Source: Epithemia pelagica (Eukaryota > Protista > Bacillariophyta). From it: a DNA stretch of 64,000 nt. The stretch covers positions 434,001 through 498,000 of the forward strand of contig OX337233.1 in assembly GCA_946965045.2 (NCBI GenBank), given 5' to 3'. The position numbers and the translations under genes were made by a program. Every line of letters starts with the position of its first letter. The stretch's first letter is position 1. Shown here piece after piece: positions 51 to 58,410 of this stretch. The notes under the pieces are model-generated. The model saw nothing but the letters and a program-made list of their open reading frames with translations. It had not been told where the DNA came from and searched no databases.

Positions 51-2528
51 ATGAACAAGAAGCGAAACGACGACAAGAACCACAACGAGCAACGAGACGA
101 GGACCATCACCGACAAGACCAGGACGACGACCAAGACCGGACCATGGAAGGCCCCCTAGAAGAAGACGAGGAAGATCCGGATACTAGTCTCTTGGTTTCC
201 TTTTGGGACTTGCACACGGACGATGAAGAAGAGGATGACGATACGGACGCCTTTCAGCCATTGGAGGAGACGGAAGACCATCTGGCGTCCCACATGCCCA
301 GTCCTACACTCTTGTTGTTGGACTGGTTGGAACAATTATGGTCGTCGTCCAGTGACACAAATCATGCCCAAGGAACCAAGGATCCAGAAGAACCAGAACA
401 ACGACAAGGTCCGGACGATTCCCACGAAACTAGGACCGTGGAGGACGTCCACACACAAGCAGAAACTGACCGAGACGAATCCGATGACCACCAGCAAAAG
501 AACAAGCACAAGGGGACCAAACGATTTCGTCTATCGACCTTGCGGTTGTTGCTGATGTTGCGAGGTCGTCGTCGTCACCGCAGTCAGGCCCCTCTGTCAG
601 CCACGCCACCAACAGAGGCATCTCCCACAACAACAACACGAGCAACCAAAACCACAATGGCCGCATCGCCTTCCTCCCCACAACGACCCAGGGCCTCGGC
701 GATTCGCACCTCGGCGATTTGCAGCAGTGGAGCAGTAGGCTCTTCTTCTTCTTCTTCCCCCTCCAGTCAGAAGCACCAGGTTCGATTTCAAATGGACACC
801 AACATCAACAAGAACAAGGATCCATTCGCGTCGAGTCCATCCTTCCACCCCACCAATAAGGAGACTTCTAGTAACACGAACGACAACGACAAGAAGGTCG
901 ACCCGAACCAGAGCCAACCAGAGCCGACAAGAACAATGACGACGCCCAGTCCCCCAGTAGACCCTAACACCGTCCCGGACACGAACGACACCCCCATTCC
1001 GAACGACTTACCACGCTCCAGTTCTACTACTCGGAACCGGAAACACGCGCCAACTCCCACCACCACCACACCAACCAAAACAGCAACTAGAACCACAACA
1101 AACACAACCACTGCCACACGTTCACAACAACCAGGCACTGCCGCAGCAATCCTGATGGTCGATCCTCGTCCCCCCGTTTCATGCATTTCCATTCCTCAAC
1201 CAGCAGTCGAACTCCAACAACAACAAGGACAAGCAGAACCTTCTTCTTCTCCTCCTCGTCGTCGTCGTTCCGTGTTGGGCGGCACCGATAAGGCTGGTAA
1301 CCGAACCAATGACATGCACCAAGAGGCGCAACAACAAGCACCACCACCACAAGACGACGCCAACGACGACGAACCACAAGTACTACCACAAGATTCCTTA
1401 CCAGACCACCAAGAATCGCCGTACAAGAATGACAAGGACGAAACCATGAACCACAAACCAATAATGAAACAGGATGATGGTTGGTGTCGTCGTCGTCGTG
1501 GAGGAGGAGTCGGTGTCGTCTGGAACAAGCTGTTGGGACTCCTCCAAGCACATACCACCACCAGCAACAAGACCGGGCTGCGACAACCACAGGACGATTC
1601 GGTTCCGGATGATGACGACGATGACGAGGACGAAAGTGAAAGTGAGAGTGAAAGTGAACTTCCCGTCATTGAAATCCCCTCGGGACCTCACACGTCCTAC
1701 TGTAGCAGTCTCAGTAGTTCCCAAGGCCTGTCCTCCACCTCCTCCAGCACGAATAGCAGTAGTACCAGTAGCAGTACCAGCAGTACCACCCGGAGCAACA
1801 CGACGACCAGTCCAGAGGAGGAGGAATCCCAGGATCCATCCGAGTCGCACCACAAGTTTTTGGCAAAGGAGACCCACGACCAGCCGCACGTGCTGCCAAC
1901 CAAAGACGATAAGGAAAACGACGAGGCTGGCATGGTTCCTCCTTATCATCCCCTGTGGTCCATCTATCCCTTGGCGACATCGTGCGACACCCACAAGGCA
2001 TTGGACCAATCGACAGCGACCCAAGATTCGGAAACGGCCTTGTTATTGCCCTCCTCGTCCTCCTCGTTTTCCTTTTCCACGTGGCAGGACCACCCCCAAA
2101 CAATCACCAACCATCGCCACCACAGTCGCAGTCGCAGCAACAACGACAACCACACGCTGCCAGACCTGGAGAATGTCCCCACGAAACGCACCAAGCCCCT
2201 GAAAGCCGCCGCACCCGTTCCCGATCCAACGACGACAACGACTCGTTCCATGGCGTTGGATACCGTCTCGACCCCGTGGTTGCCAACGACGACCAATACC
2301 AATTGGGATGCCCTCTTGTCCCATGTCCTAAATGAGCTTTGTCAGGACGACGATGGATGCGATGAATCGACCGTCTTGGGGGCCGCGCCACCTCCTCGGC
2401 CCCTGCGAGAAAATTGGAATACCAAGGCAACCAGTATCATGGCGACAACGACCACCACAACAACAACCAGTTCGTTGCATACCGATCATGCCACCTCCTG
2501 GCGACTCTCCAGCATGTCTCGAATCTAG
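51..2528 (+). CDS. Array gene A1: low-complexity disordered protein (D/E/T/S/Q-rich), ~825 aa; may start upstream of the window
   Basis: Long open frame with no stop from the window edge; first ATG at 51; short aromatic patches (LLLDWLEQLW, NWDALLSHVL) like those in other array genes; no recognisable domain. Confidence 0.75.
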   Translation: MNKKRNDDKNHNEQRDEDHHRQDQDDDQDRTMEGPLEEDEEDPDTSLLVSFWDLHTDDEEEDDDTDAFQPLEETEDHLASHMPSPTLLLLDWLEQLWSSSSDTNHAQGTKDPEEPEQRQGPDDSHETRTVEDVHTQAETDRDESDDHQQKNKHKGTKRFRLSTLRLLLMLRGRRRHRSQAPLSATPPTEASPTTTTRATKTTMAASPSSPQRPRASAIRTSAICSSGAVGSSSSSSPSSQKHQVRFQMDTNINKNKDPFASSPSFHPTNKETSSNTNDNDKKVDPNQSQPEPTRTMTTPSPPVDPNTVPDTNDTPIPNDLPRSSSTTRNRKHAPTPTTTTPTKTATRTTTNTTTATRSQQPGTAAAILMVDPRPPVSCISIPQPAVELQQQQGQAEPSSSPPRRRRSVLGGTDKAGNRTNDMHQEAQQQAPPPQDDANDDEPQVLPQDSLPDHQESPYKNDKDETMNHKPIMKQDDGWCRRRRGGGVGVVWNKLLGLLQAHTTTSNKTGLRQPQDDSVPDDDDDDEDESESESESELPVIEIPSGPHTSYCSSLSSSQGLSSTSSSTNSSSTSSSTSSTTRSNTTTSPEEEESQDPSESHHKFLAKETHDQPHVLPTKDDKENDEAGMVPPYHPLWSIYPLATSCDTHKALDQSTATQDSETALLLPSSSSSFSFSTWQDHPQTITNHRHHSRSRSNNDNHTLPDLENVPTKRTKPLKAAAPVPDPTTTTTRSMALDTVSTPWLPTTTNTNWDALLSHVLNELCQDDDGCDESTVLGAAPPPRPLRENWNTKATSIMATTTTTTTTSSLHTDHATSWRLSSMSRI

Positions 2529-3116
2529 GCTACTCCTAGCTAGAGGTAGACGCAGTATACTATATAATCTATAACACCGTCACAACCCATGTGGAGGAAG
2601 GAATCGCCAAGGTAGACGTTTCACTTGGGATTGGAATACTCCAATCTCTCCTCGGGGCCAACTACCTAGGAGTAGACACTTTTTCTCATTCGTAATAATA
2701 GTACGCCTAGCTCATTCTTGGAGTCAGATCACGTATTGCCTGCCACGCGCATAAGAGCGACTCATTGCTCGTGTGCGCGCACGCCGAGAATCTCTTGGAC
2801 GCAGTTTTCGAGATTCGTCACAAAAAATATACAAGAGAGGTGCACACAGCCAAGGATCCATGGTGCACCGCGCACCCCTGGACATGCTCCCCCATATCCC
2901 TGTGGCAGCATGGAGCAGCTCGCGATAAGTCCTCTGGAGTATAGCCCTCGGTCCGAGAAAACAATTTTGTCAAGAGAGGCATGTCAACCAAAGACCGAAA
3001 TGTGCCTGTCGCAACGTTCGAGCAAGTTCGAGAATATCTCCAAACGACATATATTCGATAGTACTCAACTATATCGACCATCGCATCCAGAGTTCCTACC
3101 ATTGCGATACAGGAAC

Positions 3117-4115
3117 ATGGTGGTCCAAGCCGAGTCCTGGAATTGTTGGATGCCAGAGGAGGAACAACAAGAACAACCATCGGTGCGTGCCAGAGTCGAT
3201 TCTCTCTTGCAATCTCTGGAGGATCCACCCAAGACGTCCAAACGACCAGGACAACAACGAGTCCAATCCCTTTTGCAGTCGCTGGAAGATCCACCCAAAC
3301 GCTCCCCACGACAACAAGAACAACGCCGACACCATCAAGATCATCATCACCAAGATTCCACCACCCCACGGCCACGACAATGGCAATCCCGTCGTCCCCG
3401 CGAGTCATCATCGAGTCCGGGCCAGCCGGTGCCTGCCCGAAGAGCATCGGCCTCGACTACGACAAGTGGTAGTACTACTACGAGTAGTAGTACTGCGACG
3501 CCCGTGTCGATTCGACGAAGTCGAGCCACGGTTCAGAAGAATGCGACACCGGAACCCTCCAGCCCACATTCCGTCATTCCAACATGGTCGATTAAGCAAT
3601 TTTATCGAACCGGCACTCGACGAAACAGCAACCACAGCCAAAACAGCAACAACAAGTCCCCACCCAAACAAAAACCTCCAGCCGTGGCCCTGCCAGAGGA
3701 GAAAGACGACGATCCACTCAATGACTACGAAGACGACGAAGACGATGATGACGAAACGCGTCACGAAAGACGCGAAGAAGAACACGATCCTGAATTGGAC
3801 GACGACAGTCGTGTCACCATGGTTCGGCGCGTGTCCATGTCTTCTCAAGTCTCTCTTTCCGTGACGTCCACATCGGCCCAGTCCACAGCCGCCTATTCCC
3901 TGGGCAATACCACCATGACCACGGCCCTGCCGCCCCAGTACTTTTATTCTTCGTATTATCATCCCTATTATTATTCGGATGCAATTCAGGATCCAGCCAC
4001 CACCAGCAACAGTGGCTATGGCGTCCTCATGGATTGCCTGTTGGAACAAAGTCTCTTGGTCTGTCACGAAATGGGACAAGATGTCATGGGTACGGCGCGG
4101 CCCATTCGATGGTAA
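3117..4115 (+). CDS. Array gene A2: disordered protein with a duplicated RVxSLLQSLEDPPK motif
   Basis: ORF 2718-4115; composition becomes array-like after ATG 3117 (aacATGg); C-terminal GYGVLMDCLLEQ resembles the array motif. Start uncertain. Confidence 0.65.
   Translation: MVVQAESWNCWMPEEEQQEQPSVRARVDSLLQSLEDPPKTSKRPGQQRVQSLLQSLEDPPKRSPRQQEQRRHHQDHHHQDSTTPRPRQWQSRRPRESSSSPGQPVPARRASASTTTSGSTTTSSSTATPVSIRRSRATVQKNATPEPSSPHSVIPTWSIKQFYRTGTRRNSNHSQNSNNKSPPKQKPPAVALPEEKDDDPLNDYEDDEDDDDETRHERREEEHDPELDDDSRVTMVRRVSMSSQVSLSVTSTSAQSTAAYSLGNTTMTTALPPQYFYSSYYHPYYYSDAIQDPATTSNSGYGVLMDCLLEQSLLVCHEMGQDVMGTARPIRW
3192..3299 (+). repeat. Two in-frame copies of a 14-codon motif, 66-nt period
   Basis: agagtcgattctctcttgcaatctctggaggatccacccaag at 3192 vs cgagtccaatcccttttgcagtcgctggaagatccacccaaa at 3258. 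Confidence 0.85.
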
Positions 4116-4550: not shown

Positions 4551-4895
4551 GGAGGGGTGCGCCGCCACCAGAAGGCCATTGTCCAAGGTGCGCCGCCATG
4601 TGTGGGGGATGCGCCACACCGAATGAAGTAGACTGTATCAGGAGCGTGTCGGAGAGGGGGAAAGAGAGAGAGTTCTTTTTGGTCTCTATAGGATGATGGA
4701 GGAGGTGCGCCACAAGGCCATTGTCCCAGGTGCGCCATGGGGGCAGTGGGGGATGCGCCTTACCGAGAGCTACGACACTTTACAGATTGGTCTCTATAAT
4801 GGAGGCGGTGCGCCACAAGGCCATTGTCCCAGGTGCGCCATGTAGAGAGTGGGGGATGCGCCACACGGAGAGGTACGACACTTTACACATTGGTG
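4551..4895 (+). repeat. Three ~100-bp tandem units, each carrying two GGTGCGCC and one GATGCGCC, upstream of A3
   Basis: Units start at ~4551, 4701 and 4801 and share ggtgcgcc..aaggccattgtcc.aggtgcgcc..gtgggggatgcgcc; units 2 and 3 also share tacgacactttaca.attggt. Confidence 0.85.
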
Positions 4896-5090: not shown

Positions 5091-6359
5091 ATGAATACAA
5101 CGTACCGGACCAATCGTTCCAATCAACGACTTGGAGGAGGAACCGTAACCCGGGATAGCATTTTGGTACAAGGCCAAAAGCAACGACGACGACAGCGACA
5201 TAGTACTCTCAAGGCATCTTCCACCTCTTCTTGCAGTTCCTGCCCCGAAGATCCCGTCCTCGTGTATCCCAAGGGACAACCACAAGCCGGAGGACAGACT
5301 CGAGACGATGGCATTGTCATGTCGTCTCTTGTTTCGGAATCGCCAGGGTGTCATTCGTTTCTATCTCCCAGAGTACCCGAACAACCACCATCGTTGTCGG
5401 GCGTTGGGACCAAGAAACAGTCTCTGTATCGACGATACAATTGTTTGGCACCCCGGACCAGATGCGCGGGACCATTACTGAATGGTCCTCTTACCGGCAT
5501 GGAGGATGAGGAATACTCCACGGCGAGCAGTCTTGGCAAGATCAACAACAACAAGGGAATTGCGATTGACAAGGACGACAAGACCAAGATCATCAACAAC
5601 ACCAGTCCAAACTCCAATACGTATTGTACACCCGGCATGTCTTCCTTTCTGTTTCCGACCAATGACGAGAATGAAACCCAAAACTCCCACAAGACCTTAT
5701 CCAAGCGACGTTACACACTCCAAAAAAGTCTCTCGAATCGATCGTCCTCCAAGTCCTTGTTGTCATTGTCATCACCACAAACTCCTGTCACCAACAACAC
5801 GAACAAGACTCGCAGCTTTCCCGACACCTTTTTTCACACTCCCCAAGACGAATTTGGATTTCCCACCACGACGACTACGACAAATCCCGACCAGGAATCG
5901 CCGCCGTCCACTACGACTTCTACTTCGACTACGACTACTAGCACAACCATGTCTGACGATGAGCCAACCCTTCGCATCTTTCCCGCCGTCAGTCCCTGGG
6001 TGACATCCTCCCCGACGTCCTCCTCCACCAAGTTGTCGAATACGCTGCCCAAAAACAAGACGACGACGACGACAAGTCCCCTCCAAAACTCTCCGAAGAA
6101 GCAGCAGGACCACAAAAAGACAAAATCTCCATCATCTTCCACGTCTCGTCATTCCTGCTGGTCCTCGTCTGGCAACACCACGGTTTGTTCCAATGACTCA
6201 TCATCGCATTCGGACGATGCCTTTACCGAACTTGTGACGGCCGCACGGTCGCCCCATCGTGGTGCCTATTCTTCGTATATGATGATGGATCAGTGGTTTT
6301 ATCCCGACCAAGATGACGATTCGGCCGTGTCCGAGTTTTTTGGTTCCAACTATTTTTAA
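5091..6359 (+). CDS. Array gene A3: S/T-rich disordered protein, 422 aa
   Basis: ORF with accATG; C-terminus DDAFTEL...MMMDQWFY...DDDSAVSEFFG carries all three array motifs. Confidence 0.75.
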   Translation: MNTTYRTNRSNQRLGGGTVTRDSILVQGQKQRRRQRHSTLKASSTSSCSSCPEDPVLVYPKGQPQAGGQTRDDGIVMSSLVSESPGCHSFLSPRVPEQPPSLSGVGTKKQSLYRRYNCLAPRTRCAGPLLNGPLTGMEDEEYSTASSLGKINNNKGIAIDKDDKTKIINNTSPNSNTYCTPGMSSFLFPTNDENETQNSHKTLSKRRYTLQKSLSNRSSSKSLLSLSSPQTPVTNNTNKTRSFPDTFFHTPQDEFGFPTTTTTTNPDQESPPSTTTSTSTTTTSTTMSDDEPTLRIFPAVSPWVTSSPTSSSTKLSNTLPKNKTTTTTSPLQNSPKKQQDHKKTKSPSSSTSRHSCWSSSGNTTVCSNDSSSHSDDAFTELVTAARSPHRGAYSSYMMMDQWFYPDQDDDSAVSEFFGSNYF

Positions 6360-6777: not shown

Positions 6778-9773
6778 TCGTTTGTTCCTCTCTCCGTGCT
6801 CTATTCCATGGTTCTAGATCCAAATCGTAGTCTAGAGGAGTACTAGAAAAATAGTCCTAGATAGCTACTCTCTCTCTAGCTAGCGGTTGGCGAACATTTC
6901 AGTGTACAATAATATATTGGATCTCGCAGTGTTCCTATAATATTGTAGTACGATATCCCCCATTTGGGGGTTCTTGGGAACCTTGGGTAGACCGCCCGTC
7001 GGGCATGTGTTTCCTATCTCGCACGCTCTCAAAATGAGAAACACGATGCCATGGCGCAGCTCACGGTGCGCCAACGCAACAGTAGTGGATTCGCTCCATC
7101 CCAATAATTGCCATACTACCGTTCCAAAGTAAAGCAGGGAGAAATGGACGGTCGTTACTTACACCGGACATGGTTCAACCGAAGGCGCGATGATAATAAT
7201 AACATATTTACACTCTACATGTGCGTACTACTACGAGAACCGGTACCCACCCTCGTATTCCGGGAATGACTAGACAGTATGGTGCGACACAACATCATGA
7301 GGTTCACGAACGGCCAACCCTAACGGCGAGACTGTACGTTGATTCCTCCACCAGTTGGGCCGTTGACACTTTTAGTTTTGGTTTCTGGGAATATTTCGCA
7401 GGCACTGCGTTCTCTCGCTCTCGGTGCTCCAGTGCAACAATCCTCCTCCTTTTTTTGCGCGGTGTGCACACAGTGTTGTTGTTTCCAAAAAGAACCATCA
7501 TCCTCCACAGCAAGAGAGAGCCGAACCAAGACACGATCGAACCGAACGGGGGAGGGACAAGGAGGAGGAACAAGGCACTGCCTGTCATTGAGTGTTGTCA
7601 TGAATACTAGTAGTATTTCACAGACGAGGAACCGGAATGCCATGGCGTCGTCCAGGATTGCCCATTCCTCCAAACAAACCACGACGAGGACGAATTCAAT
7701 GTTCAAATCCTCCAAGGGACGTTCCACTTCTCCTTCCAAAGCAACAACAGCGCGGCAAAAGTTACCACCCAAGTCGCAGCAACACAAGAAAAAGCAACAG
7801 CAACCGTCTCCCTCCAAATCCAGAGGCACAACGACAAGCAGTCCTCCGCGACGAACAACCAATCGCCCACCGGCTCGCTCCGTCGTGGGTCGAAGCATCA
7901 GTAGTACACGAAATCAACGACCCACCAGTCCCGCGGCTCGTCGTCGATCACAACCCCCGAAATCGAATGGGGCCCGCATGATCCAAGACGACAAGTCCAC
8001 TGGCCGAAACGAGTTGTTTCATCATCATCATCATCATCCTTCCACAACACACCACAGTCGTTCCACCCGGTCCACGTTCGCCAAACAACAACAACGCCCG
8101 CCTCTGATGGCTGCCCCCGCCCTGTGGTCCTCCGACAAGGATGACGTGTCGTGGAGTAGCTCTCATGTCGATGCCAGTCCGGTACAAGTGCCTTCTTCCT
8201 CCTGGTCATCCTGGTTGGGTGTCGGCTATTTGACACGATCAACGTCCTTGTCCGCGTCCTCCGAAGCACCGTCGTTTGTTCCTCTGAGGCGTCCATTCCA
8301 TGGTTCTAGATCCAAAATCGTAGTCTAGAGGAGTACTAGAAAAATATTCGCCTAGGAAGCTACTCTCTAGCTAGCGGTTGGCGAACATTTCAGTGTACAA
8401 TAATATATTGGATATCGCAGTGTTCCTATAATATTGTAGTACGATATCCCCCATTTTGGGGGTCTTGGGAACCTTCGGTAGCGCGCCCGTCGGGCATGTG
8501 TTTCCTAACTCGCACGCTCTCAAAATGAGAAACCCGACGCCATGGCGCAGCTCACGGTGCGCCAACGCAACAGTAGTGGATTCGCTCCATCCCAATAATT
8601 GCCATACTACCGTTCCAAAGTAAAGCAGGGAGAAGTGGACGGTCGTTACTTACACCGGACATGGTTCAACCGAAGGCGCGATGATAATAACATATATACA
8701 CTTTACGTGTGCGTACTACTACTACGAGAACCGGTACCCACCCTCGTATTCCGGGAATGGCTTGACAGTATGGTGCGACACAACATTATGAGGTTCACGA
8801 ACGACCTCTCTTTGGCGAGACTGTACCTCCACCAGTTGGTCCGTTGACACTTTTTTGGGTTTCGGTTTTTTTCGCAGGCAGGTGGGCCGGTGCTCCGTGC
8901 AACAATCCTCCTCCTTTTTTTGCGCACAGTGCACACAGTTGTTGTTGTTGTTTCCAAAAAGAACCATCATCCTCCACAGCAAGAGAGAGCCGAACCAAGA
9001 CACGATCGAACCGAACGGGGGAGGGACAAGGAGGAGGAACAAGGCACTGCCTGTCATTGAGTGTTGTCATGAATACTAGTAGCATTTCGCATAGAAGGAA
9101 CCGGAATGCCACTGCGTCGTCATCAAGGATTGGTAAAGCGCAACAAACCACACCAACGACGACGAGGACGAATGGTTCCATGTTCAAATCCTCCAAGGTT
9201 CGTTCCACCTCTCCTTCCAAAGCAACAACAACAACGACAACACGACCAAAGTTACCACCCAAGTCGCAGCAAACCAAGAAAAAGCAACAACAGCAATCGT
9301 CTTCATCCAAATCAAGAGGCACCACATCAATGATGACAACCAGTCCTCCTCCGCAGCGACGAACCAATCGACCACCGGCCCGCTCCGTCGTGGGTCGAAG
9401 CATCAGTAGTACACGAAACCAACGACCCACCAGTCCCGCGGCTCGTCGTCGACCACAACAACAACCCCCGAAATCGAATGGGGCCCGCATGATCCAAGAC
9501 GACAAGTCCACTGCCAGAAACGACTCGTTTCATCAAACAACCACACAAAACAGCCGTTCCACCCGGTCCTCGTCGATAAAGCAACCCTCGTCTTCGACTC
9601 CCCCAACAGCTGCCGCCCTGTGGTCCTCCGACCAGGATGACGTGTCGTGGAGTAGCTCTCATGTCGATGCCAGTCCGGTACAAGTGTCTTCTTCCTCTTG
9701 GTCATCCTGGTTCGGTGTCAGTTCTTGGACACGATCCCCGTCCTGGTCCGCGTCGTCGGAAGCACCGTCGTTT
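6778..9773 (+). repeat. Tandem duplication of a ~1.5-kb unit (promoter plus 5' part of gene A4)
   Basis: 6778-8271 aligns with 8272-9767; TCGTTT is present at 6778, at the junction 8272 and at 9768. Confidence 0.92.
7600..8328 (+). CDS. Array gene A4a: 3'-truncated paralog of A4b (242 aa)
   Basis: gtcATG at 7600; MNTSSIS...SEAPSF aligns with the N-terminus of 9069-11525, then runs into the duplicated promoter and stops. Confidence 0.65.
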   Translation: MNTSSISQTRNRNAMASSRIAHSSKQTTTRTNSMFKSSKGRSTSPSKATTARQKLPPKSQQHKKKQQQPSPSKSRGTTTSSPPRRTTNRPPARSVVGRSISSTRNQRPTSPAARRRSQPPKSNGARMIQDDKSTGRNELFHHHHHHPSTTHHSRSTRSTFAKQQQRPPLMAAPALWSSDKDDVSWSSSHVDASPVQVPSSSWSSWLGVGYLTRSTSLSASSEAPSFVPLRRPFHGSRSKIVV

Positions 9774-11525: not shown

Positions 11526-12685
11526 GTAGAGCCTTTCTGTTTGCCGACACCAAACAAAACCAAAAAGAATGTTTGGGATGACGCGAGCCTCTGCGAAACC
11601 AAACACCAAGAAACCAGAGGATGCGAGAGTCCGACTAGGTAGTATACGAACCGTCACACGGTGCTGGGGTTGGATATCTTCTAGTAGTACATAGTATACA
11701 TGTGTATGGATTTCTAGAGTAGGTACAAGTTCATGGTCAGAGGCACATCCTGGGCCAGTCACCCATTGAGGAAGTGTCCGTTTCGTATAGCCATCATCGC
11801 ACTCGATGGTCAATGTCACTGGAACGCCCAAGCACACAACATGTTCGTTTGCCGTTCTCATCATCCTGTCGATGGTATATAGTGTAATGGGTGACACCAC
11901 GTCAGATATTGGACCATTTCCAGAGCCCCTCGTTTTTGTTGTCACGGTGGCTGCTCATGTGGCAGTCACGATTGTTGTTTGCTAGAAAAAGTCCCAAAAC
12001 GGGGGTGCAAATTGTCCTTTCCTTTCCAGAACAGATTGGTGTCGTATCGCCTTTGGATACCAAGCCAAGAAGCATTGGCAGAACCAATCACACCATGATG
12101 AGCTGCAGAGAGATATACTTTTGACTCTCTAGAGCATTCTCTGCTAGAGGGTTGGATCCATACCTCTAACTTAGGGTGTGTCAGTGGCGGAGTCACGCAT
12201 TAGCGACCTAGGTAGACCTGTTGTTGCAGAATTTCTCATCCACGCCAAAGGCGTCGAGTTGCCCGCGTGGGAAGATGGCTCTAGCTCGCGAGAGGTGGCG
12301 CGACCAAGCTAGGGATAGCTAGGAGTACAACTGCCTCTCTAGCTAGGGTATACCAGAGACCGAGGGAGGGATTCGGTGCGCCATGGGTACAGGAAAACTC
12401 CTTTTGCGGTTCTATATATGGCAAGATTCGATCGCAAATTTCTCGTTGCAACGGAATTGGTGGACCAGAGAGCGGAACCTTTGGCGCACCTACACAAAGC
12501 TGTTATGTGGTTCAAGCACACGGTTGTTGGTGTCTCATTTTTGTTTGCCCTCACACACAAAAGAGTCCGGTACCACCAAAAAATTCAGCTATCTACCTAC
12601 AAGAACCCTTCCTCTTCTTGATTGACAGTTTCCACTGTTCTGGAAGCGCATAATATTGCAACGAGTCCAAAACACAGTAGAAACT

Positions 12686-15958: not shown

Positions 15959-16279
15959 AACCAAGGAGAGAAGAAGGACTCTCTCTCTCTCTATTCGTAC
16001 ATTCGGAGTATTCTTGTTGGACGCGCCATGAATGGATTGTTTTACTACTGCTGCCACCACGAGGGTTTGTGTTGTGTTTCGTATGAATAATTTCTATATA
16101 TATACTCTCTACGTATAATAGATGGACTGTATGATACGGGCCTCGTTTCCACAACGCTTGGTTGGGTCATCGGTAGGTACGACGACCTGTTGTTCACTGC
16201 AATGTAGATAGTGAGAAGTGAGAAGACTTTGTCGTCCGGCGCACCTGAGAGTTCGTCGCGCGCTTGCGCGCTCGCGATA

Positions 16280-34847: not shown

Positions 34848-34870
34848 ATTCTCGGGGTGAGCTACACTTT

Positions 34871-34878
34871 GCGGGGAC
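34871..34878 (+). other. Short polypurine-tract candidate
   Basis: GCGGGGAC directly before the 3' LTR; shorter than usual. Confidence 0.4.
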
Positions 34879-49032: not shown

Positions 49033-51108
49033 ATGGTGTGGAAACAAAAGGCCACGACAAAACCCACGACGCTGCTCAACAAGAGTAGCAGCAGTACCCA
49101 CAGCAGTACAGTGACTACGACACTTGTCCAGTCGTCCAAACCCACCGAGTCCAGTGCTGGTGTTCCCACCAAGAAACCACCTCCCAAAACGAAACGGATC
49201 ATGAACAACAACCCCAAGAAGAAGAACCAAAAGACTCCAATCAAGAGTACCAAGTCTCCGCAACCGGTACCAGCCAAGTCATCGACGTCTCTTCGTCGCT
49301 CGAGTACGGAGAAACCTCTTGTATCCACCAAGACGACACCCACCAAGACGCCAACAAAGACGCCAACGGCCACCATTCCAGCGACTCCTCCACAGAACCA
49401 CAACAAGAACAAGAGCGAGTCACTGTCATCTTCCACTAGTCCTACCACCACCACTGTGGCTCCTGCTACCATTGCTACCACTCCCGGGAATGCTACCCCA
49501 GTTACCCCCAACCCTGCAGAACCATTGCAAACGTCCAACTCACAAGACAAACCGGAACCCTACCATCACCTCGAGGTGGAAATTGATGAAGATCCGTACC
49601 ATTCTGCCAAAGAGCAACCACAAGAAGAAACTTCAAGGACTCTCCCAAACACCACCAACAACCATGATGATCCAGTCGTTCGTTCGCCGGAACAAGAACA
49701 CGAAGACCATGTTTCGGTATCCTTATCGTCCTATTATCGTCGTCCCCGTCCCGAACTCACGATCCGATTGGACCGCATCTTGAGTGGTGTCTTGAAACAC
49801 CACCAGGATGACGACGAAGAAGATGATTCCAGTACGTCATCGTATTTTGATTATCATGCCAACATTCGTGCCCCGATTGGATCGGTGGAATTTGTGCCCG
49901 CTGGGCAGAATGTTGTTGTGGATTCCAGAGCCACTCCTAGTAAAAGTCCTACTACGACGAGTCGTCGTGAGACCAAGAAAAAGACCACAGGGGCGGTATC
50001 CAAAACAGGCCAGTCCTCCACCCCCAACAACAAGACGACGACGACGACGACGGATTCCCAAACTCGTTCCAGTCAAACGAGTCGTCGTCGGCGACGACGA
50101 CGACCCCTCCCATCATCGCATCTTCGGTCGTCGCACGACAAGCATGCCATTGTGGTGGTCAATGACATGGTGACCCCCGGACGATCCTCCCGACGCCGTG
50201 GCGGTTTGCGAGCCAGTTTGGGAACCACGTCCAGCAATGACAGTCCCCAATCGTCCTCCAAGCCGGATTTTGCGGCCAATCCGGTTTTGGTCACAAACTC
50301 TTCCACGACAACTCCCCCGAAACGAGTCGCGTCCGATTCCTTTCCTCAACAACACCCACAAGAGAATTCCAAGACGACGACACCTTCCAAATCTGTCGTG
50401 ACGGCACCGGTCAACACGAAGAAGAAGCAACCGAAGCAACCTACCAAACTTCAGACGCCCCTACGAAAAGCAACAACAACAACAACAACAACAACAACGG
50501 CCACAGATACCACAAAACCATCTCCCAAGAAACCCAGCACGACCCTAAAGAAGACGACAACGACGACGGCAATGCCCATCACCACGAATTTCACCACATG
50601 CAGTAGCATCACGGCGTCCGAAGACGGTGACAGTGACACTGATACTCGATCCACATTGTCCTCCACCTCCACTTCGTCCTCCCTCTTGCCGGCGACACCA
50701 CCCACGACGCAACTCGACGATCCAACTTGCACGATAGACCGAACAAAAACCGCCTTGGTCCCAACGACACCATCTCCCACCAAAGACGACGCCTTGTCGT
50801 CATCGTCATCGCCCTTTGCCTCCACCTTTGTGGTGGATCCACAATCGACTGTTTGGGATTTGGTCTGGCATTCGCTCCAATCCCTGTGCTATACACGTTC
50901 CAACAAAAAGAACAAGAAGACCAACAAGGCTTCTTCTTCGTCTTCGTACTTGGATCAATGGTACAGTCCTAACGTTTTGGTCACATCGGACCACCACAAG
51001 GATCCCGCCATGAAAACGACAATGACGACAACGATCCCACCTCAACGCCACGGGAGCACGACGTCCCAGGAGACCCATACCACGATCTTGTGGCAGTGCA
51101 ATGAATAA
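49033..51108 (+). CDS. Array gene A15: T/S/K/P-rich disordered protein, 691 aa
   Basis: accATG; long ORF; patches TVWDLVWHSL and SYLDQWYSP. Confidence 0.78.
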   Translation: MVWKQKATTKPTTLLNKSSSSTHSSTVTTTLVQSSKPTESSAGVPTKKPPPKTKRIMNNNPKKKNQKTPIKSTKSPQPVPAKSSTSLRRSSTEKPLVSTKTTPTKTPTKTPTATIPATPPQNHNKNKSESLSSSTSPTTTTVAPATIATTPGNATPVTPNPAEPLQTSNSQDKPEPYHHLEVEIDEDPYHSAKEQPQEETSRTLPNTTNNHDDPVVRSPEQEHEDHVSVSLSSYYRRPRPELTIRLDRILSGVLKHHQDDDEEDDSSTSSYFDYHANIRAPIGSVEFVPAGQNVVVDSRATPSKSPTTTSRRETKKKTTGAVSKTGQSSTPNNKTTTTTTDSQTRSSQTSRRRRRRRPLPSSHLRSSHDKHAIVVVNDMVTPGRSSRRRGGLRASLGTTSSNDSPQSSSKPDFAANPVLVTNSSTTTPPKRVASDSFPQQHPQENSKTTTPSKSVVTAPVNTKKKQPKQPTKLQTPLRKATTTTTTTTTATDTTKPSPKKPSTTLKKTTTTTAMPITTNFTTCSSITASEDGDSDTDTRSTLSSTSTSSSLLPATPPTTQLDDPTCTIDRTKTALVPTTPSPTKDDALSSSSSPFASTFVVDPQSTVWDLVWHSLQSLCYTRSNKKNKKTNKASSSSSYLDQWYSPNVLVTSDHHKDPAMKTTMTTTIPPQRHGSTTSQETHTTILWQCNE

Positions 51109-51239: not shown

Positions 51240-53503
51240 TTTACGCGCATGCCGAGCTTGCGGCTCCAACATGCGTCCCCATATTTTCCAAAACGCCAAC
51301 CAAGTGGCTGTGGGGGGTGCTCCATGGCGGAGAATCATACAATGGAACTATGACGCACATACATTGTGCTTCCAAAATAGTACCCAAATGACACATCCCA
51401 AAATGAAACTAGCTCATCTGCAAGCGCACTACTTCTTTGTCCAGCAAACGAACCTGATCAGAGAGTTCCGCCACAATCTTCCTTTGTTCAATCATCATAT
51501 CTTCTAGTTTCCTAAATCGCTCTTCGGGGTCATCACAAGCATTAGAAAGTTCACCAGTGGTACGGTCGGACACTGGCAGTCTTTCGTTTCCTCCGGTCAC
51601 CGAACCGGATTCAACCTCAAACTCTGGTTTCAGACCAGCAAGGTTCTTTCATCACCAAGACTGACATTCAAGTCGACAAGCTGCCGTAACTCTTCAATCT
51701 TGCGAGCAATTGGAAGACAACCCGCCAAGTCGTCCATATCCTGTAATTTCCCTTTCAGTTCGTCAATGGTTTCTTGAAGCTCCTCTATAGAGCGAAACTT
51801 GTCTTCGTTATCACGAAGCTATTCCAGTAAAGGCAACATGGGTTTTGCCTCAATGGCCTCTTGGAGCGCCCTGACATTGCTACGATCCGTATTTGCAAGT
51901 TGAATTTTGCTGTTGAGTTTTTCGAGTTCCATGTCGAGCTCAGCACGACACGAATACATGTTCTATATACAAAACAACAACAACACCACCCCAATCGTGG
52001 TAAGAGAACAGTACAACAAACTTTCAAACGAATTTCTCCACTTGGGATATCAACATCGTACCCTGGTGTTTTCCTGCATGTCAATCACTTCGAGCGCCTC
52101 ACAGGTCTCTTCATACCCTCCAATGACAACAATGCAGTCCGACAATGAAACCACACTAGGAGCGTAGCGCGCCACGGTCATGTCCGGTATGTGGAACACC
52201 ACGTTGCGCGTCGTGTCCAATACTTCTACTGACTTGACAGTTTTATCGGTATCACCTCCAGTCACAATCAGACAAGTTCCGACTTTGGCAACAGCATGTT
52301 TTTGCCGAGGAACAGAAAGGACAAGATCCTTGTGGACTTTCCATTTCGATGATGAGGGAAAGATGAAACTCACATCCTCATTGTTCTCGGGAGATGATTT
52401 CATGAATTCCAAGTATTCCACAGACTTGGAAGCCGAATTTCCATTGTACCCACCAGTGACAAAGATGCGACGGCCCACAACCGCCATTCCACACACAAAT
52501 CGAGGAACCGTCATGGAAGGGCCTGCACTAACAATGTGTTGAGTTGGCACTGCGGTATCAATAATATCCGTCGAGGACAAACAAAATCCATTGTTTCCAC
52601 CGACGACCACAATAAATCGGTTGTGTACCGGAGCAGCTTGACATCCGCCTCTGGGAGTGGACAATGTACATTTCAATGTAGTCCAATGCTTATTCTCGTT
52701 GGTAATACATGGAAGAGCAATCCCCTCTATCGAATCCAGACAACGACCATTACAGTATCCTCCCAAGGCGTACACTTAGCCATTACAAACCACTGCTGCA
52801 TGTCCACCACGATTTTGACTCAGATTTGGACCTTTTTCCCACTCCTTTCGGTCCTTGTCGTCCAAATCGAGCAACAAGACCGAATTGGTTGCGCCATTTG
52901 CTGAATTTCCTCCAATGACAACGACTGTGTGCTGTTCGTTTCTCTCGGCGTTTACAACAACCGATGCATGATTATAGCGCCATCCACCCAAAAGCGGTGG
53001 CCATGAGTCGGAGTTCCATTGTGGCATTTCATCGTTGTTCGTGTCAGGAGAGAGAAGATTGGACAACCTCGCTTGTTTTTGCATGGTATTGGCAACACAA
53101 TAAAGCGTGGAGAATAAACAATGTGGATTGTTCAGCTTTGGAGGTTGGGCTAAACACTAAACATGCCAGGTTTTGATGTGAAGCGCTCAACCAAGAAGTC
53201 ACTCCACGAACCGTTGAGCTTCATTGACACACAGTGTTTGTGTATGCACCAACGTTTGGATCCAACATGTCCATTGTCCTAACCTTACGTTGCTGTTGTA
53301 TCTGTATCAACGATCCAAAAGCATCAGGCTGTTGTTGTACTCGGTTCGTGGAGTATTTCCCCGACCTATGCGCGACTCCCTTCCTCAAGTGCGACTTATG
53401 TCCACCAAGAATAGAAACGCGACCGTAGGTTTTACGCGCGCATGCCGAGCTTGTAGGTCTCTCTCATATTTTCCAAAACGTCAACGGTGCGCCGTGGCGG
53501 AGA
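51240..53503 (+). repeat. Imperfect direct repeats (51240-51333 and 53431-53503) bracketing the kelch pseudogene
   Basis: Both contain TTTACGCGC..ATGCCGAGCTTG, CATATTTTCCAAAACGyCAAC and GGTGCkCCrTGGCGGAGA. Confidence 0.8.
51409..53084 (-). pseudogene. Kelch-repeat protein with a C-terminal coiled coil; nonsense-disrupted
   Basis: Kelch blades (VVVIGG, RGGHAAVV, IVVVGG, RIFVTGG, LIVTGG); in-frame TAA 52778-52776 (VCNG*VYALGG); 99-nt GT-AG intron 52061-51963 joins ENTR to NMYSCRAELDMELEKL; second stop TAG at 51821-51819; frameshifted tail. Confidence 0.85.
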
Positions 53504-53870
53504 GTGGAAGTATGGCGCACATACAGGGTGCTTCCGCATACACCGTCTTGGGTGTGCACCGTTTGGCAGTTCGGGTGCGCATGGTGCACACCACACATGT
53601 CCATTCCGCACAACCACCAAGACACTCTAGGAGGCGCAGCGCTCTCGGCCGGCGTGTGTGGACGAGGAGCTCCAGTAGGGTTTGTGGAGCCGCACCGTGC
53701 CGCTCCAAAGAGGTGAGCTGCACGAGTTTGTCGTATATCCAACGAATAGGAGAAACTGGCGATGGTTGGAGCCGCGCAAGGTACCTTTTTCGACGACCAA
53801 AGGATGATCGGGCTGGGCCACATTCTAGTATACTATTCATCCTCCACACCGCCAAACCCAACAAAAGACC

Positions 53871-56800
53871 ATGGAGATGGTACGAATCGACTCTTTGGAT
53901 CAACCACCACCACCTCCACCACCACTACAACAACAGGAACGAGGAGGAGGACCACTGGACCACCAACCACTCCTCCAACAATCACCACCATCACCACAGG
54001 TGCGACATGGTTCCAAACTGCTCACCAAGATGCGAGCCCATCAGCGTCGCAGCAGGCATTCTTTTGTGGAACAGGACTCCGCAAAAGAGGACCTTGGTAT
54101 CCGGACAACAGCAACAACGACAACAACGACACTGAAAAGACGACAAGGCGAATTCGTGTCCAATACGGTCGTCTCTGGCAGACCAACCACAACCACAACA
54201 CCAACTCGGACGATACAACCGCACGATTTGCAGCCCGAGAAAACCGATTGTGAGGAGGAGCAACAACAAGCACAAGAACAACAAGAATCCGAAGAAGATA
54301 CAACAACAACCGCCAGTCAGTTTCACTATTACCAACAAGAACAACTGCAACGACTCGTAGGGTCTTTGTATTCTCCACATGTCTCGGACTTTGTGGACCA
54401 CGGTGCCAGTTTGGAGGAGATGAACAACAACAAGGACCAGAAATCCTGGCACGACAACGACAACGACAAAGCGTCGTCCGAGGAGCAGGAAATTTGGTTG
54501 GACGCAGCACAACCAAAAGAACCAGAACACTTTCATGAATATCCACCAATCGTCTCATCTACCGTTTGGGAGCCCGAGGAGGAGGAGGAGCAACAGGAGC
54601 CCGAACTAGAAGAAGAAGAAGAAGAAGAAGAAGAAGAAGAAGAAGAAGAAGAAGAAGAAGAAGAAGAAGAAGAAGAAGAAGAAGAAGAAGAAGAAGAAGA
54701 AGAAGAAGAAGAAGAAGAGACTGAGATTGTATTCCTACCCGCAACGACCACTCGTCATTCCAGCCAGCATCAAGATACACGACCGAGTATTCGTACGATA
54801 CGAAACGATCCACTCACTGGACACCAGGAAAATCCTGTTTTCGTACAGGACCCAAACGAAAAAGAGCAAGAAGACCAAGAGGAGCATCCAAATCGTCGTT
54901 TGTTGCGACGTCGACAACGTCGTCGACAGCACCGCCACCGTCGTCGTGCCTTGTTTCCCAAGCTGACTGCGACAACCTTTTTGGGTCCCAGTATTTTGGA
55001 TATGACCACGACAAGTGGCAGCAGTGTCCAGGATGATTCGGCCTCATCATCATCGTCGTCATCATCGTCACTCCACGGGAACCGCCGCAAGGATCCAACA
55101 ACTGCCAAGCCGCAGTCACAGGCAACCACCAACCTGGATCCAAGCCAGAACGAGCCCGACGACTCTGTGGATTTGCCGCAAGACGACCTGGAATACAACA
55201 ACAACAAGGAGGAGGACCAGGACAGGTCGTCTCCCATCGTTTCGCACCTCTTGTCGGATTCCTCGTCCTTTTCCAATGCGGAACAAGAGTCGCTTCGGTG
55301 GCCCTTGTTGTGGTCCTCCACGAGCCAAAACAACAAGAACAACCACAAGACACTGCATGTCACGACTACATGTCGTCCTCCGGCGCCCTTTCGTCGACGC
55401 CACAGTGGATCCTCTTCCTCCTCCTCGTTTGGCAAACAACAAGAACACCAAGATTCCTTTTCGTCGAACGGTACTCCTCCTCCCGCATATCGATTCGAAC
55501 CCTTGGATGTAACAGCCGCAGCAGGGTTCGAGAAAAAGAAGGAGAAGAAGAGTCACCAGTCACCATCCACAGAACAACAACCACAAGTGATGGAGAAGGC
55601 ACCCCAAGACGACGCGGCGTCTTTAGACAGTGGGATTCTGGATCTCGACTACCATGTCGATCAACTGACCAAGGACTTGTTGCAACGAATGATCCACGAA
55701 CAACAAGAGGATGACATCACCTCGACCATCTCCACACAAGAAGGGGACCTGAGTAGTACCAGTCCCAATCCCGACAGCTTTTCGTCCCTGGACGACGACG
55801 AGGATGGCTTTGTGTCGGACGACGGCAATTCAAATGACAACAACAACATGGCGCATGACACGAGTCTTGTTGTCCAGTATTGGTTGGATGACATGTTGGG
55901 GGATGACCTTGACAATGATAGTTATTCGGCCATTTCCTCCTTTTTTGCCACGGGAAGTCGTTTCGTGGATGGGTCCTCTCCCCTCAAAACCACGAGGACT
56001 GCAACACATGGAGATGCTGGATTGGAGAAGAATCACAGTGAGGAAAGATCCTCGTTTTCTTTTGAACAGAGAACTGCGGGAAGCAACCAACCAAACGGCA
56101 TGGCTTCGCCTGGTCCAACCGTCTCGGGTCATTCTGACAATAAACAGTCACTGGACGAGACCGAGCCTGCGCCATCTTCGACTGCCACAACCACCATTAC
56201 AACACCACAACAACCCATGTCCTGGCCGGACGACATGACGACCCGTTCCAACATTACGGCCGATGAGCATCTCATGGTTCTTTGTCGCGCTCCATCGTTT
56301 GCTTCTAGTACCTCCAACGAATCGCTTCCACATGAGAAGCCTCAAGTCACCACGGCTCCTCCTCCGTCGTCATCGTCCGTTTCGCCGGCCCAAGATATTC
56401 TTTCGGGACTGACGGCACCCTTGACAACCACACGGTCCCTGTGGACGCAGGACTCGTGGTCCTTGGACGACGACGACGACGATTCCAAGGACGGCGACTC
56501 AGACAAGGAAGAAACGGCCTTTTTGGATCGTTTCATGGATGAAACACATCGCTATCTCAAGGAGTGGAAGGTCACGGCCGCGTCTACCGGTGAAGAGGAC
56601 GATGGACTCCCGACAACCTCTCAAGACGACGACGACGACGACGATTCCATGTCCCTGGACATGAGTGAGAGTGACCGATCCGTCCTGGATTTGGACCACG
56701 CCAAGGCCCTTGTGTCCGATCATTCTTGGTTGCCGGCGCCATCCAATGTATCGTCCTTTTCGTGTACGGACGACGACGACAGTGACAACTCTCTGTACTC

Positions 56801-57218
56801 GGCGGAGGATCAAGTCTCGCCTTCGCCTCCGCCACGCTCACCAGCACCATCCGCCACACAATTCTCGTCCACGACTGTGGATGGTGGTCCTCGTCCACTG
56901 CTTTTCCAGCATTGGAAACAGTACCTGACCAAACACAAGACGACGGTGCCGAAACCAGGACGTTCCAGCCAGAGCATTATTCGAGACATGAACCAGACGC
57001 CAACCAAGCTGGACGAGAAGAAGGATACATTATCGCCAATGGATCGAATTCCTGTTTCGTCACCCATGGCAGCATCCAAAACAATGACAACAACTATTAG
57101 ACAGGAGAGTTTGGTGGCTCGTTCGGTACGTCGTCCATCCCGACTGTTGGGGCGTCGTCGTCGTAGCATTCACACGTTGTACAACAAGGTGGAGGAGGAA
57201 CCATCCTGTGATTGGTAA
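53871..57218 (+). CDS. Array gene A16: acidic disordered protein, 1115 aa, with poly-Glu
   Basis: accATG; LVVQYWLDDMLG...DSYSAISSFF motif. Confidence 0.82.
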   Translation: MEMVRIDSLDQPPPPPPPLQQQERGGGPLDHQPLLQQSPPSPQVRHGSKLLTKMRAHQRRSRHSFVEQDSAKEDLGIRTTATTTTTTLKRRQGEFVSNTVVSGRPTTTTTPTRTIQPHDLQPEKTDCEEEQQQAQEQQESEEDTTTTASQFHYYQQEQLQRLVGSLYSPHVSDFVDHGASLEEMNNNKDQKSWHDNDNDKASSEEQEIWLDAAQPKEPEHFHEYPPIVSSTVWEPEEEEEQQEPELEEEEEEEEEEEEEEEEEEEEEEEEEEEEEEEEEEEEETEIVFLPATTTRHSSQHQDTRPSIRTIRNDPLTGHQENPVFVQDPNEKEQEDQEEHPNRRLLRRRQRRRQHRHRRRALFPKLTATTFLGPSILDMTTTSGSSVQDDSASSSSSSSSSLHGNRRKDPTTAKPQSQATTNLDPSQNEPDDSVDLPQDDLEYNNNKEEDQDRSSPIVSHLLSDSSSFSNAEQESLRWPLLWSSTSQNNKNNHKTLHVTTTCRPPAPFRRRHSGSSSSSSFGKQQEHQDSFSSNGTPPPAYRFEPLDVTAAAGFEKKKEKKSHQSPSTEQQPQVMEKAPQDDAASLDSGILDLDYHVDQLTKDLLQRMIHEQQEDDITSTISTQEGDLSSTSPNPDSFSSLDDDEDGFVSDDGNSNDNNNMAHDTSLVVQYWLDDMLGDDLDNDSYSAISSFFATGSRFVDGSSPLKTTRTATHGDAGLEKNHSEERSSFSFEQRTAGSNQPNGMASPGPTVSGHSDNKQSLDETEPAPSSTATTTITTPQQPMSWPDDMTTRSNITADEHLMVLCRAPSFASSTSNESLPHEKPQVTTAPPPSSSSVSPAQDILSGLTAPLTTTRSLWTQDSWSLDDDDDDSKDGDSDKEETAFLDRFMDETHRYLKEWKVTAASTGEEDDGLPTTSQDDDDDDDSMSLDMSESDRSVLDLDHAKALVSDHSWLPAPSNVSSFSCTDDDDSDNSLYSAEDQVSPSPPPRSPAPSATQFSSTTVDGGPRPLLFQHWKQYLTKHKTTVPKPGRSSQSIIRDMNQTPTKLDEKKDTLSPMDRIPVSSPMAASKTMTTTIRQESLVARSVRRPSRLLGRRRRSIHTLYNKVEEEPSCDW
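54609..54716 (+). repeat. Perfect (GAA)36 microsatellite encoding poly-E
   Basis: 108 uninterrupted nt of GAA. Confidence 0.95.
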
Positions 57219-57822
57219 TATCCTTGCATACAACAGTCCTCCCCTGTTGGTTCCCTTTTCTGTTCCAAAGGATCGATCTCTACGTATACTACACGTCTCC
57301 GTTCGACTCCTCTTGTGGTGTACCACCATGACACACCACTTCTTGTGGGCTGGCATTGTCCTTGTCGGATGGAATGCCCGACACAACCTTGTGTGTGTGT
57401 GTTGTGGGAGCAACGCCTACTATTCCTTTGGTGCTGCTGGAAAGAGAGTCTCATATTTCATAATCACATGTTGTGTTTCTAGAATTTGGTCGATCCCTAT
57501 ACTCTGCTACTAGTAATAGCAGTGAGCAGTTTTGTCCTCTCAGTATAGTACAGAGAGGTTGGTGGTCTAAAGAAGCAGGGGTCGTCTTTTGAAGAGTAGG
57601 AAACTCTCCTAGCTATAGCTCAGGGCAAGCTAGGGATAGCTAGCTAGCTCTGTGTGCGCGCAGGAGGACCACTCGAGAACGCGGGCTTCTCCACTCGGTC
57701 GATCGCTGTTGGCGAGAACATCACAACAATTGGTGAGCAACTGGTCCCTCCAACAGAAGAACCAACACCCTACTACAAGGAACGTCGACAACGACGACAA
57801 GACCCCATCAGCAGCAGCAGTG

Positions 57823-58410
57823 ATGAGAGGAGAGCAGTGGCGTGGTTGGAAACAACGATTCTTTCCCAAACACAACCACAACAACAACAACAACAACAAC
57901 AAGAAAAAGAAAAAGAAGAAGACAGTGGCGCCACAAGAACAGGCATGGGCAGCAACAACAACAACGGCGACTACAACAACGACCACAAGAGACGGGAGTA
58001 CTATCCGCAAGACTGCTTCCGAAACGGAACGAGCCATGGAAAAATTGATTCAAGGTTACGAGAAAACGGTACAAGAGTACAAGAAAGAAACGCATGCCAA
58101 TTCGGAGGAGCTCGTGAACCAGGCGACGGTGCAATTTTTGCAACAAACACACCAAGAGCTTCAAGCCATGGACCATGCCAATGCCAATGACAAAGATGAC
58201 GATTCCGATTCCTTTGCCTCGTCCTTGCTCCGGGGCATGCTTAATTATCTCCAAAACGGCTCCTCGGACGACGACGACGAGAACCCCGAGGCACCCACGA
58301 AAGGCACCACCCAAATGAGTTCCTGTGATCGCTGTCTGTTCTGCGTCTATCTCCTTTGTTTCATGGTGTGCCAACCGTGCATTCCTTGGAGGAGTACTAC
58401 TACTCAGTAG
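57823..58410 (+). CDS. Array gene A17: small protein with a predicted helix and a Cys-rich hydrophobic C-terminus
   Basis: First ATG of ORF 57652-58410; ERAMEKLIQGYEKTVQEYKKE helix; SSLLRGMLNYL patch; tail CDRCLFCVYLLCFMVCQPCIPW. Confidence 0.65.
   Translation: MRGEQWRGWKQRFFPKHNHNNNNNNNKKKKKKKTVAPQEQAWAATTTTATTTTTTRDGSTIRKTASETERAMEKLIQGYEKTVQEYKKETHANSEELVNQATVQFLQQTHQELQAMDHANANDKDDDSDSFASSLLRGMLNYLQNGSSDDDDENPEAPTKGTTQMSSCDRCLFCVYLLCFMVCQPCIPWRSTTTQ

Follow-up and report, generated by a model that had tools for sequence, protein, structure and literature searches.

We analysed a stretch of 64,000 nucleotides from the diatom Epithemia pelagica (positions 434,001 to 498,000 of contig OX337233.1, that is, C6:434001-498000 of the 60.5-Mb, 23-contig assembly GCA_946965045.2), which is called the window below. 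Eighteen long ATG-starting open reading frames (ORFs), labelled A1 to A17 with A4a and A4b counted apart, lie on the + strand across window 51-58410. Nine of them (A3, A4b, A5, A6, A7, A8, A9, A12, and A16; window 5091-57215, +) are, judged by their sequences, tandemly arrayed and co-oriented paralogues, and their proteins share three short motifs that form islands in chains otherwise diverged beyond alignment. We consider it very probable that this is a real tandem family under selection. The three-motif family and its module are undescribed; tandem, species-specific expansion is a kind of event already known in diatoms.

Cross-validation of the motifs and family membership

The motifs, termed M1, M2, and M3, have consensus sequences of about [ST]-D-D-A-F-[TS]-x-[LI], [LM]-D-x-L-M-x-Y-W-[LV]-E-G-[VIM]-[YF]-G, and D-[SM]-[VA]-[LIVM]-S-A-F-[LVF]-G, respectively. 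Every motif string listed in the original prediction was present in the ORF to which it had been assigned, on the + strand and in the gene frame, and the motif patterns gave 0 matches in off-frame or minus-strand translations of the array. The constant order that had been claimed was also observed, M1, M2, and M3 following one another wherever two or three of them co-occur. Because patterns written from the listed strings are circular, cross-validation was performed.

Hidden Markov models (HMMs) of the aligned module were built with one member left out at a time and were searched against the six-frame translations of the window and its flanking DNA. These models retrieved A4b (E 3e-9), A5 (9e-13), A12 (2.4e-8), and A6 (4.5e-5), gave marginal results for A3 and A7, and did not retrieve A8, A9, A10, A11, or A16. 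Ungapped matrices trained on A4b, A5, and A12 only were also applied, with 2,000 shuffles per array protein and about 140,000 control windows, for which 190 kb from elsewhere in this genome and the array off-frames were used. With the M1 matrix, A3 scored above every control window (24.0) and A9 gave a shuffle p of 0.0115. With the M2 matrix, A6 (42) and A7 (34.0) were above the control maximum of 28.7, and the shuffle p of A16 was 0.0005. The M3 matrix placed A3 (25.7), A8 (27.3), and A9 (26.7) above every control window and gave a p of 0.012 for A16. When tested against shuffled controls in this way, six members beyond the training set thus exceeded chance.

The original prediction had described about 18 genes united by the motifs. 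Nine of these stand, and for about half of the array the motifs were not demonstrable. Three of the listed strings (LMDWMGSMF in A14, YLDQWY in A15, and MMDQWFY in A3) were not the best-scoring sites in their own proteins and were not above chance. The matrix scan found no significant motif in A1, A2, A4a, A13, or A17; together with A14 and A15, these make up the seven array genes that have no demonstrable motif. A10 and A11 are possible members, for which matches are visible by eye and were otherwise obtained only with self-trained HMMs, and peptide searches for eye-matched sites in A1, A10, A11, and A17 gave no significant result. Two sites in the N-terminal region of A1, DAFQPL and LLLDWLEQLW, were marginal (p about 0.06 each).

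All members are encoded on the + strand. Each of the three core members carries the whole set of motifs: A4b (9069-11522, 818 aa) has M1 at 10938-10967, M2 at 10989-11033, and M3 at 11160-11195; A5 (13159-14007, 283 aa) has them at 13441-13470, 13504-13548, and 13696-13731; and A12 (37624-38181, 186 aa), which is the smallest and most constrained of the core, has them at 37960-37989, 38005-38049, and 38119-38154. A3 (5091-6356, 422 aa) has M1 at 6207-6236 and M3 at 6315-6350, 6 residues before the stop, within a compact module of 56 residues (6189-6356). M2 was found in A6 (14834-15955, 374 aa) near the C-terminus at 15845-15889, with a weak M1-like KAFSE before it, and in A7 (16747-18615, 623 aa) at 17386-17430, with DLSSVL where M1 would be. 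A8 (19966-21276, 437 aa) carries M3 only, at 21193-21228, 16 residues before the stop, and A9 (22548-24704, 719 aa) has C-terminal M1 (24603-24632) and M3 (24654-24689) and no M2. In A16 (53871-57215, 1,115 aa), M2 (55860-55904) and M3 (55920-55955) lie in the middle of the protein, 5 residues apart; among the members, the M2-to-M3 spacing ranges from about 5 to about 50 residues. A16 also contains a perfect (AGA)x37 run at 54608-54718, which gives a 37-residue poly-Glu tract. Regarding the possible members, A10 (25490-28475) has C-terminal M1-like (28305-28334) and M3-like (28395-28430) sites, and A11 (35470-36615, 382 aa) has the M2-like WMDYWSEVF (36163-36207), for which the p was 0.095 when taken alone. 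DLSSVL precedes this M2-like site at 11 residues, the same distance as in A7.

Taken together, the cross-validation bears out, for these nine genes, the idea of an old tandem family in which the islands were kept while the low-complexity rest diverged.

Coding status of the array and a second copy of the locus

The + strand shows negative GC skew and positive AT skew over its whole length. This skew fits a single direction of transcription but also favours chance ORFs; accordingly, the coding status needed testing. For this purpose, we used a second copy of the locus, contig ctg1300l of ERZ21939226, which is separate from the main assembly and collinear with window 757-45484. The two copies share 84-95% nucleotide identity with many indels, and the second copy may be the other haplotype or derive from a sister strain.

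Orthologous ORFs were open in the second copy for nearly all array genes. Among 656 substitutions in A1-A8, half fell at third codon positions. The ratio of nonsynonymous to synonymous substitution rates (dN/dS) was 0.21-0.49 in each of 13 sense frames tested, with a pooled sense value of 0.36; individual estimates were 0.35-0.37 for A1, 0.43-0.47 for A3, 0.32 for A14, and 0.18-0.21 for A12. Opposite several array genes, the minus strand carries ORFs of 200-370 aa, and the long antisense ORFs gave values of 0.6-1.9, including a 355-aa ORF opposite A5 (13015-14079, -). These values indicate that the antisense ORFs are by-products of the skewed composition, and a Pfam search of three of them gave no match. 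Hence, the earlier claim that every long ORF is on the + strand was borne out for the 18 array genes and is not literally true, since long antisense ORFs exist that behave as non-coding sequence. The array ORFs are real genes under relaxed purifying selection.

The same data bear on the view that the ORFs are not genes at all, but open frames produced by a strand poor in T and G, with motifs that arose by chance or as repeats at the DNA level. The skew throughout the + strand and the overlapping ORFs in other frames and on the minus strand would agree with such an origin. However, sense dN/dS values of 0.21-0.49 stand against values of about 1 for antisense ORFs, substitutions are in excess at third positions, and the ORFs have stayed intact across an indel-rich copy that has diverged by 7-16%. 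Furthermore, the motifs differ synonymously and are absent from all off-frames, and the sequencing coverage described next is restricted to ORF-bearing segments. We regard this view as scarcely credible.

Four sequencing runs were compared over 8700-14650; no holder of this stretch was recorded as RNA, and the kind of one run, X4, is unrecorded. Three runs, which are DNA-like, covered all 30 bins. X4 covered A4b and A5 with margins resembling untranslated regions, and three spacers were at zero. An X4 contig of 1,321 nt (12770-14090) was gapless and collinear over A5. This pattern is as expected from an RNA library, and it suggests unspliced transcription of A4b and A5. The genes had been called intronless and apparently have no introns, judging by the unbroken ORFs and the one collinear contig over A5; for the array at large, this description is not confirmed.

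Disabled alleles were observed in both copies. In the second copy, A5 carries a nonsense change from CGA to TGA at codon 59 (opposite window 13333-13335) and A8 an in-frame TAG (opposite window about 20870), so that loss-of-function alleles segregate in the family. Conversely, the second copy has A10 as a single ORF of 864 aa, whereas the A10 of the window is cut by a TAG at 26774-26776 and by a frameshift, which sits in a 198-bp x4.7 coding repeat (27032-27934). Either this allele is broken or the repeat has been misassembled.

Three inserts break the row of array genes: a copia-type element, an ORF that has no Pfam match, and a kelch-repeat ORF on the minus strand. The kelch and copia inserts named in the original prediction are genuine, as the kelch repeats were found and the copia element carries RVT_2. 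The latter occupies window 28588-35037 and has two 159-bp long terminal repeats, which are 100% identical, and TCTT at both ends; it is absent at the same place in the collinear second copy, which indicates that its insertion is recent and polymorphic. The ORF at 45861-47717 had been labelled an NTPase, and no Pfam match was obtained for it. Collinearity with the second copy stops at 45484, where the second copy runs on into a long minus-strand ORF; because the copies differ beyond this point (window 45484-47720), the Pfam-less gene may belong to an insertion.

The remaining array genes are also on the + strand. A1 (51-2525, 825 aa), A2 (2910-4112, 401 aa), A13 (38979-40448, 490 aa), A14 (41758-43887, 710 aa), and A15 (49033-51105, 691 aa) encode disordered proteins. 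A4a (7600-8325, 242 aa) repeats the N-terminus of A4b in truncated form; it arose, along with its promoter and a promoter box described below, by a tandem duplication of 1.5 kb (6778-8277 / 8272-9773, 86% identity). A17 (57823-58407, 195 aa) is the last array gene. Its C-terminus (58318-58407) is a Cys-rich hydrophobic segment that resembles a tail anchor; the other array proteins do not end in this way.

Islands in disordered proteins

A charge-hydropathy plot placed all 18 array proteins on the disordered side, in agreement with the disorder and low complexity noted before. The NTPase-like ORF, the copia pol, the kelch protein, and a neighbouring gene of the window, taken as folded controls, scored as ordered; bulky hydrophobic residues amounted to 12-24% in the array proteins versus 31-38% in these four. 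The array proteins are rich in Ser, Thr, Asp, and Pro. At the Pfam-A cut-off, no family was found in the 18 proteins or in the A10 pieces, and two sub-threshold matches were compositional only. By inspection, no hydrophobic signal-like segment was seen at the N-terminus of any of the 18 proteins. The proteins had been described as unalignable in bulk, and indeed BLASTP with masking and composition correction joined only A4a with A4b and the A10 pieces with each other; at the DNA level, the recent A4a/A4b duplication was the only similarity among members.

Within these chains, the islands are set apart by their conservation. Between the two copies, 9 of 252 motif residues differed (3.6%) versus 359 of 3,999 elsewhere (9.0%; Fisher p 0.0017). 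Paralogues encode the same motif residues by different codons, and such synonymous differences inside the motifs indicate that the constraint acts at the protein level. AlphaFold2 gave no fold for the module alignment, with a mean predicted local distance difference test (pLDDT) score of 59.8 and a predicted template modelling (pTM) score of 0.25; helices were predicted at M2 (pLDDT about 74) and at M3, where the helix is short, but not at M1. For whole A12, the pLDDT was 48 and no secondary structure was predicted. These models describe the islands as probable locally helical stretches in a disordered chain and not as a folded domain. Lying in disorder and being more conserved than their flanks, the islands have the character of short linear motifs or of helical molecular recognition features (alpha-MoRFs). 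We also considered M3 as a plastid signal of the ASAFAP-like type and rejected this, as M3 is C-terminal and no hydrophobic signal segment precedes it.

The original prediction had pointed out a resemblance to ATG8-interacting (LIR/AIM) motifs. The loose LIR core is [W/F/Y]-x-x-[L/I/V] behind acidic or phosphorylatable residues. M1, with its pattern acidic-acidic-A-F-[TS]-x-[LI] in A3, A4b, A5, A9, and A12, in which D-A-F-[TS]-x-[LI] follows S, D, or E, fits this core at very low specificity, so the resemblance held for M1 and failed for M2 and M3. If M1 were such a motif, the proteins would be adaptors or cargo of selective autophagy; M1 sits in a disordered chain, and the genome encodes a canonical ATG8. 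Nevertheless, the core is so loose that most proteins match it by chance, the better conserved M2 and M3 do not fit, M1 is absent from four of the nine supported members (A6, A7, A8, and A16), and no computation favours binding. An autophagy role through M1 is accordingly very improbable.

Some features would rather suit nuclear regulators, in which the islands would act as acidic activation motifs or bind co-factors. The islands are clusters of W, F, Y, L, and M beside runs of Asp and Glu, and clusters of at least 5 Lys/Arg in 7 residues, which are possible nuclear signals, occur in 11 of the 18 proteins, 7 of them beating shuffles at p < 0.05. On the other hand, basic clusters of note are missing from A4b, A5, and A12, which form the core, and no DNA-binding or other known domain was found with Pfam. 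The likeness is compositional only, and, taken as a whole, the core modules in A4b and A5 show no strong acidity. A nuclear function of this kind is quite improbable.

The distribution of the module was also examined. In the whole 60.5-Mb genome, all 11 places found by the module HMM were in the window and were its own training sequences, and HMMs of M2 alone and of M3 alone gave window sites only. Against 1.84 billion representative proteins, the module profile gave six matches that are alleles of this genome or of the second copy and a seventh that is a repeat-driven false match. The A5 module had no relative in the JGI metagenomes, and a homologous-protein search with A5 returned alleles of this species only. 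The same search with A7 and A14 was empty and missed even their own 92-96% identical alleles, as low-complexity words crowd the candidates, and it is uninformative. A search of the ESM Atlas with A12 gave a best score of 0.82 at low recognition, and no lead. The motifs thus did not occur at similar frequency in unrelated disordered proteins, since both the genome and the 1.84 billion proteins showed their own family only, and the module is restricted to this species. Confinement to one paralogous family means that the motifs are shared by descent and not by convergence, and only their retention argues for function.

Such confinement would also be expected if the islands served the family itself, either as stickers that form homo- or hetero-oligomers or a condensate, or as the slowest-decaying remnants of the ancestor. 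The disordered chains bear up to three hydrophobic or aromatic helices, and the genes seem co-regulated (see below), so that the proteins would coexist. However, AlphaFold leaves the three islands unpacked (pTM 0.25), and several members keep one island only and are therefore not multivalent. On this evidence, we judge a role within the family, or mere slow decay, to be rather unlikely.

Promoter box, proposed explanation, and comparison with known systems

A k-mer screen of the upstream regions yielded GTGCGC/GCGCAC, which extends to GGTGCGCC(A/T); the box is also written GGTGCGCCA(A/T), and its reverse complement is (A/T)TGGCGCACC. The window contains 16 copies of GGTGCGCC; shuffles gave an expectation of 1.45, and 16 copies were never reached in 100 shuffles. 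Genome-wide, 931 copies were counted in 60.5 Mb, barely more than the 776 of the reversed control, and the window is 16-fold enriched. Fifteen of the 16 window copies are intergenic and lie mostly 250-820 nt upstream of an ATG. Comparable intergenic boxes were unchanged in the second copy in 14 of 14 cases versus 57% of intergenic 8-mers (p about 4e-4), and this conservation argues that the box is used.

Six boxes on the + strand lie in the A3 promoter (4556-4839), partly in a 103-bp x1.9 tandem repeat (4696-4894). The box before A4a (7065-7072, +) has its duplicate before A4b (8556-8563). Two boxes in opposite orientation precede A5 (12375-12382, +, and 12483-12490, -), and the 5' end of the X4 contig follows 280-395 nt downstream of them. 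Single boxes were found before A7 (16238-16245, -), A12 (37248-37255, +), A13 (38648-38655, -), A14 (40941-40948, +), and A16 (53486-53493, +), the last with one-mismatch copies at 53512-53521 and 52888-52897. A6 has two one-mismatch boxes (14543-14562), and other genes have such boxes as well. Closely paired boxes were counted at six places genome-wide; three belong to the A3 promoter, and the other three loci are C7:906162, C10:84424, and C16:479363. In the 20 kb adjoining the window upstream, 6 GGTGCGCC boxes were counted.

The consensus of the E2F site is TTTSSCGC, and we tried the box as an E2F-type site. It was rejected, because the full TTTGGCGC is found only around the copy at 12481-12490 and the invariant ACC falls outside the E2F site. 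A Myb-type box, YCAACGGAY, was not enriched in the window (2 matches versus 3.4 expected, none in a promoter-like cluster), and a literature search on the box sequence returned primers and unrelated matches only.

Other features of the region were as follows. The palindromes CTAGCTA/TAGCTAG occur at 33 sites (2536-60732), between genes only, and extend past the end of the array; they could serve this genome generally as spacer or terminator-like signals. The CTAGCTAG palindromes were rejected as an array-specific signal, as they are intergenic everywhere and also occur outside the array. In the upstream flank (C6:404001-434000), several FAS1-like paralogues were seen, together with a paralogous pair of low-complexity ORFs (C6:408552-411203 and 422060-424495), which do not have the motifs.

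On balance, we favour, by a modest degree of confidence, the explanation that the locus is a tandem array of paralogues with retained islands that act as contact sites and with a shared box. In this view, one ancestor with an ordered M1-M2-M3 module has been multiplied by repeated tandem duplication, leaving nine, perhaps eleven (with A10 and A11), descendants. Substitutions and numerous indels of the slippage type have made the low-complexity remainder unalignable, and some members have lost one or two islands. The islands are presumed to be short amphipathic helices with an acidic start and a Gly cap, and M2, M3, and perhaps M1 would be contacts that become helical on binding (MoRF-type), either for a common partner or for each other. 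The family would then consist of interchangeable adaptors with differing disordered arms, and the box GGTGCGCC(A/T) would tie most of the array to one transcription factor and thereby to joint expression. As to the parts of this explanation, co-regulation through the box appears somewhat probable, and contact of the islands with a shared partner is plausible while falling short of probable; a common outside partner is our leading guess over mutual contacts.

Several points weigh against this explanation. No partner was found and no computation predicts binding, and the sharing of motifs needs nothing beyond descent. The dN/dS of about 0.36 is relaxed, and the island losses, together with the loss-of-function alleles of A5 and A8 in the second copy and of A10 in the window, indicate that members are singly dispensable. 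Box and motifs are not matched gene for gene, in that A13 and A14 have a box and no motifs, and in A8 and A9, which have motifs, no exact box is present. Duplication of the promoters could simply have carried the box along. In addition, the kind of X4 is unrecorded, so that transcription is suggested and not proven, and X4 leaves 9496-9694 within the A4b ORF empty. The three DNA-like runs cover this interval and no joint was reported there; the gap could be an intron, a boundary between two transcripts, or an effect of a contig filter.

A more far-reaching reading takes the array for a self-contained, species-restricted regulon, in which one factor would read GGTGCGCC(A/T) and turn on the interchangeable disordered adaptors. 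M2 and M3 would then represent docking motifs of a new class, all directed at one cellular machine and perhaps specific to a stage of the life cycle. We consider it distinctly unlikely; if true, it would show a motif-partner system and its own cis-element arising and expanding jointly by tandem duplication.

Diatom genomes contain a large share of species-specific genes that have no assigned function, many of them in tandem arrays, and the present array, which we explain as a tandem paralogue family with retained islands, is a clean and checkable example. Here, in a single species, selection keeps three tiny islands, predicted to form helices, and one promoter box. The locus offers experimental handles, namely two peptides, one 8-10-bp box, and the 186-aa minimal member A12, which allow one to ask about the role of such orphan disordered families and about the origin of new interaction systems based on motifs. 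Even if the function were trivial or redundant, the locus would still document rapid birth-and-death evolution through its nonsense alleles, truncated duplicate, and recent copia insertion.

In the diatom Seminavis robusta, tandem-driven expansions are largely species-specific, under weaker constraint than other duplicates, and mostly unannotated, and many species-specific genes are induced in sexual reproduction (PMC7335047). The array described here resembles those arrays in being species-specific, tandem-expanded, and weakly constrained (PMC7335047). The named tandem families of Seminavis robusta have recognisable domains (LRR, cyclases, HSF, and others), whereas the array proteins are domainless and fully disordered, and the array, unlike those families, is held together by three short islands and a promoter box only.

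The islands are comparable to short linear motifs and alpha-MoRFs, as they comprise 8-15 residues in disorder, are conserved above their flanks, and are predicted to be locally helical. Classical linear motifs, however, recur convergently in unrelated proteins, whereas the islands occur in one paralogous family only, and M2 and M3 match no nameable motif class.

A further comparison is offered by the clustered, fast-evolving RXLR and Crinkler effectors of oomycetes, a group that, like the diatoms, belongs to the stramenopiles; these effectors are pathogen proteins with N-terminal signal peptides and N-terminal motifs. The array proteins differ from them in having no signal-like N-terminus and in bearing their motifs mostly in C-terminal positions. 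They share with these clusters a mode of evolution in which a short motif is kept while the rest diverges fast, and in which presence/absence and loss-of-function polymorphism accompanies the family.

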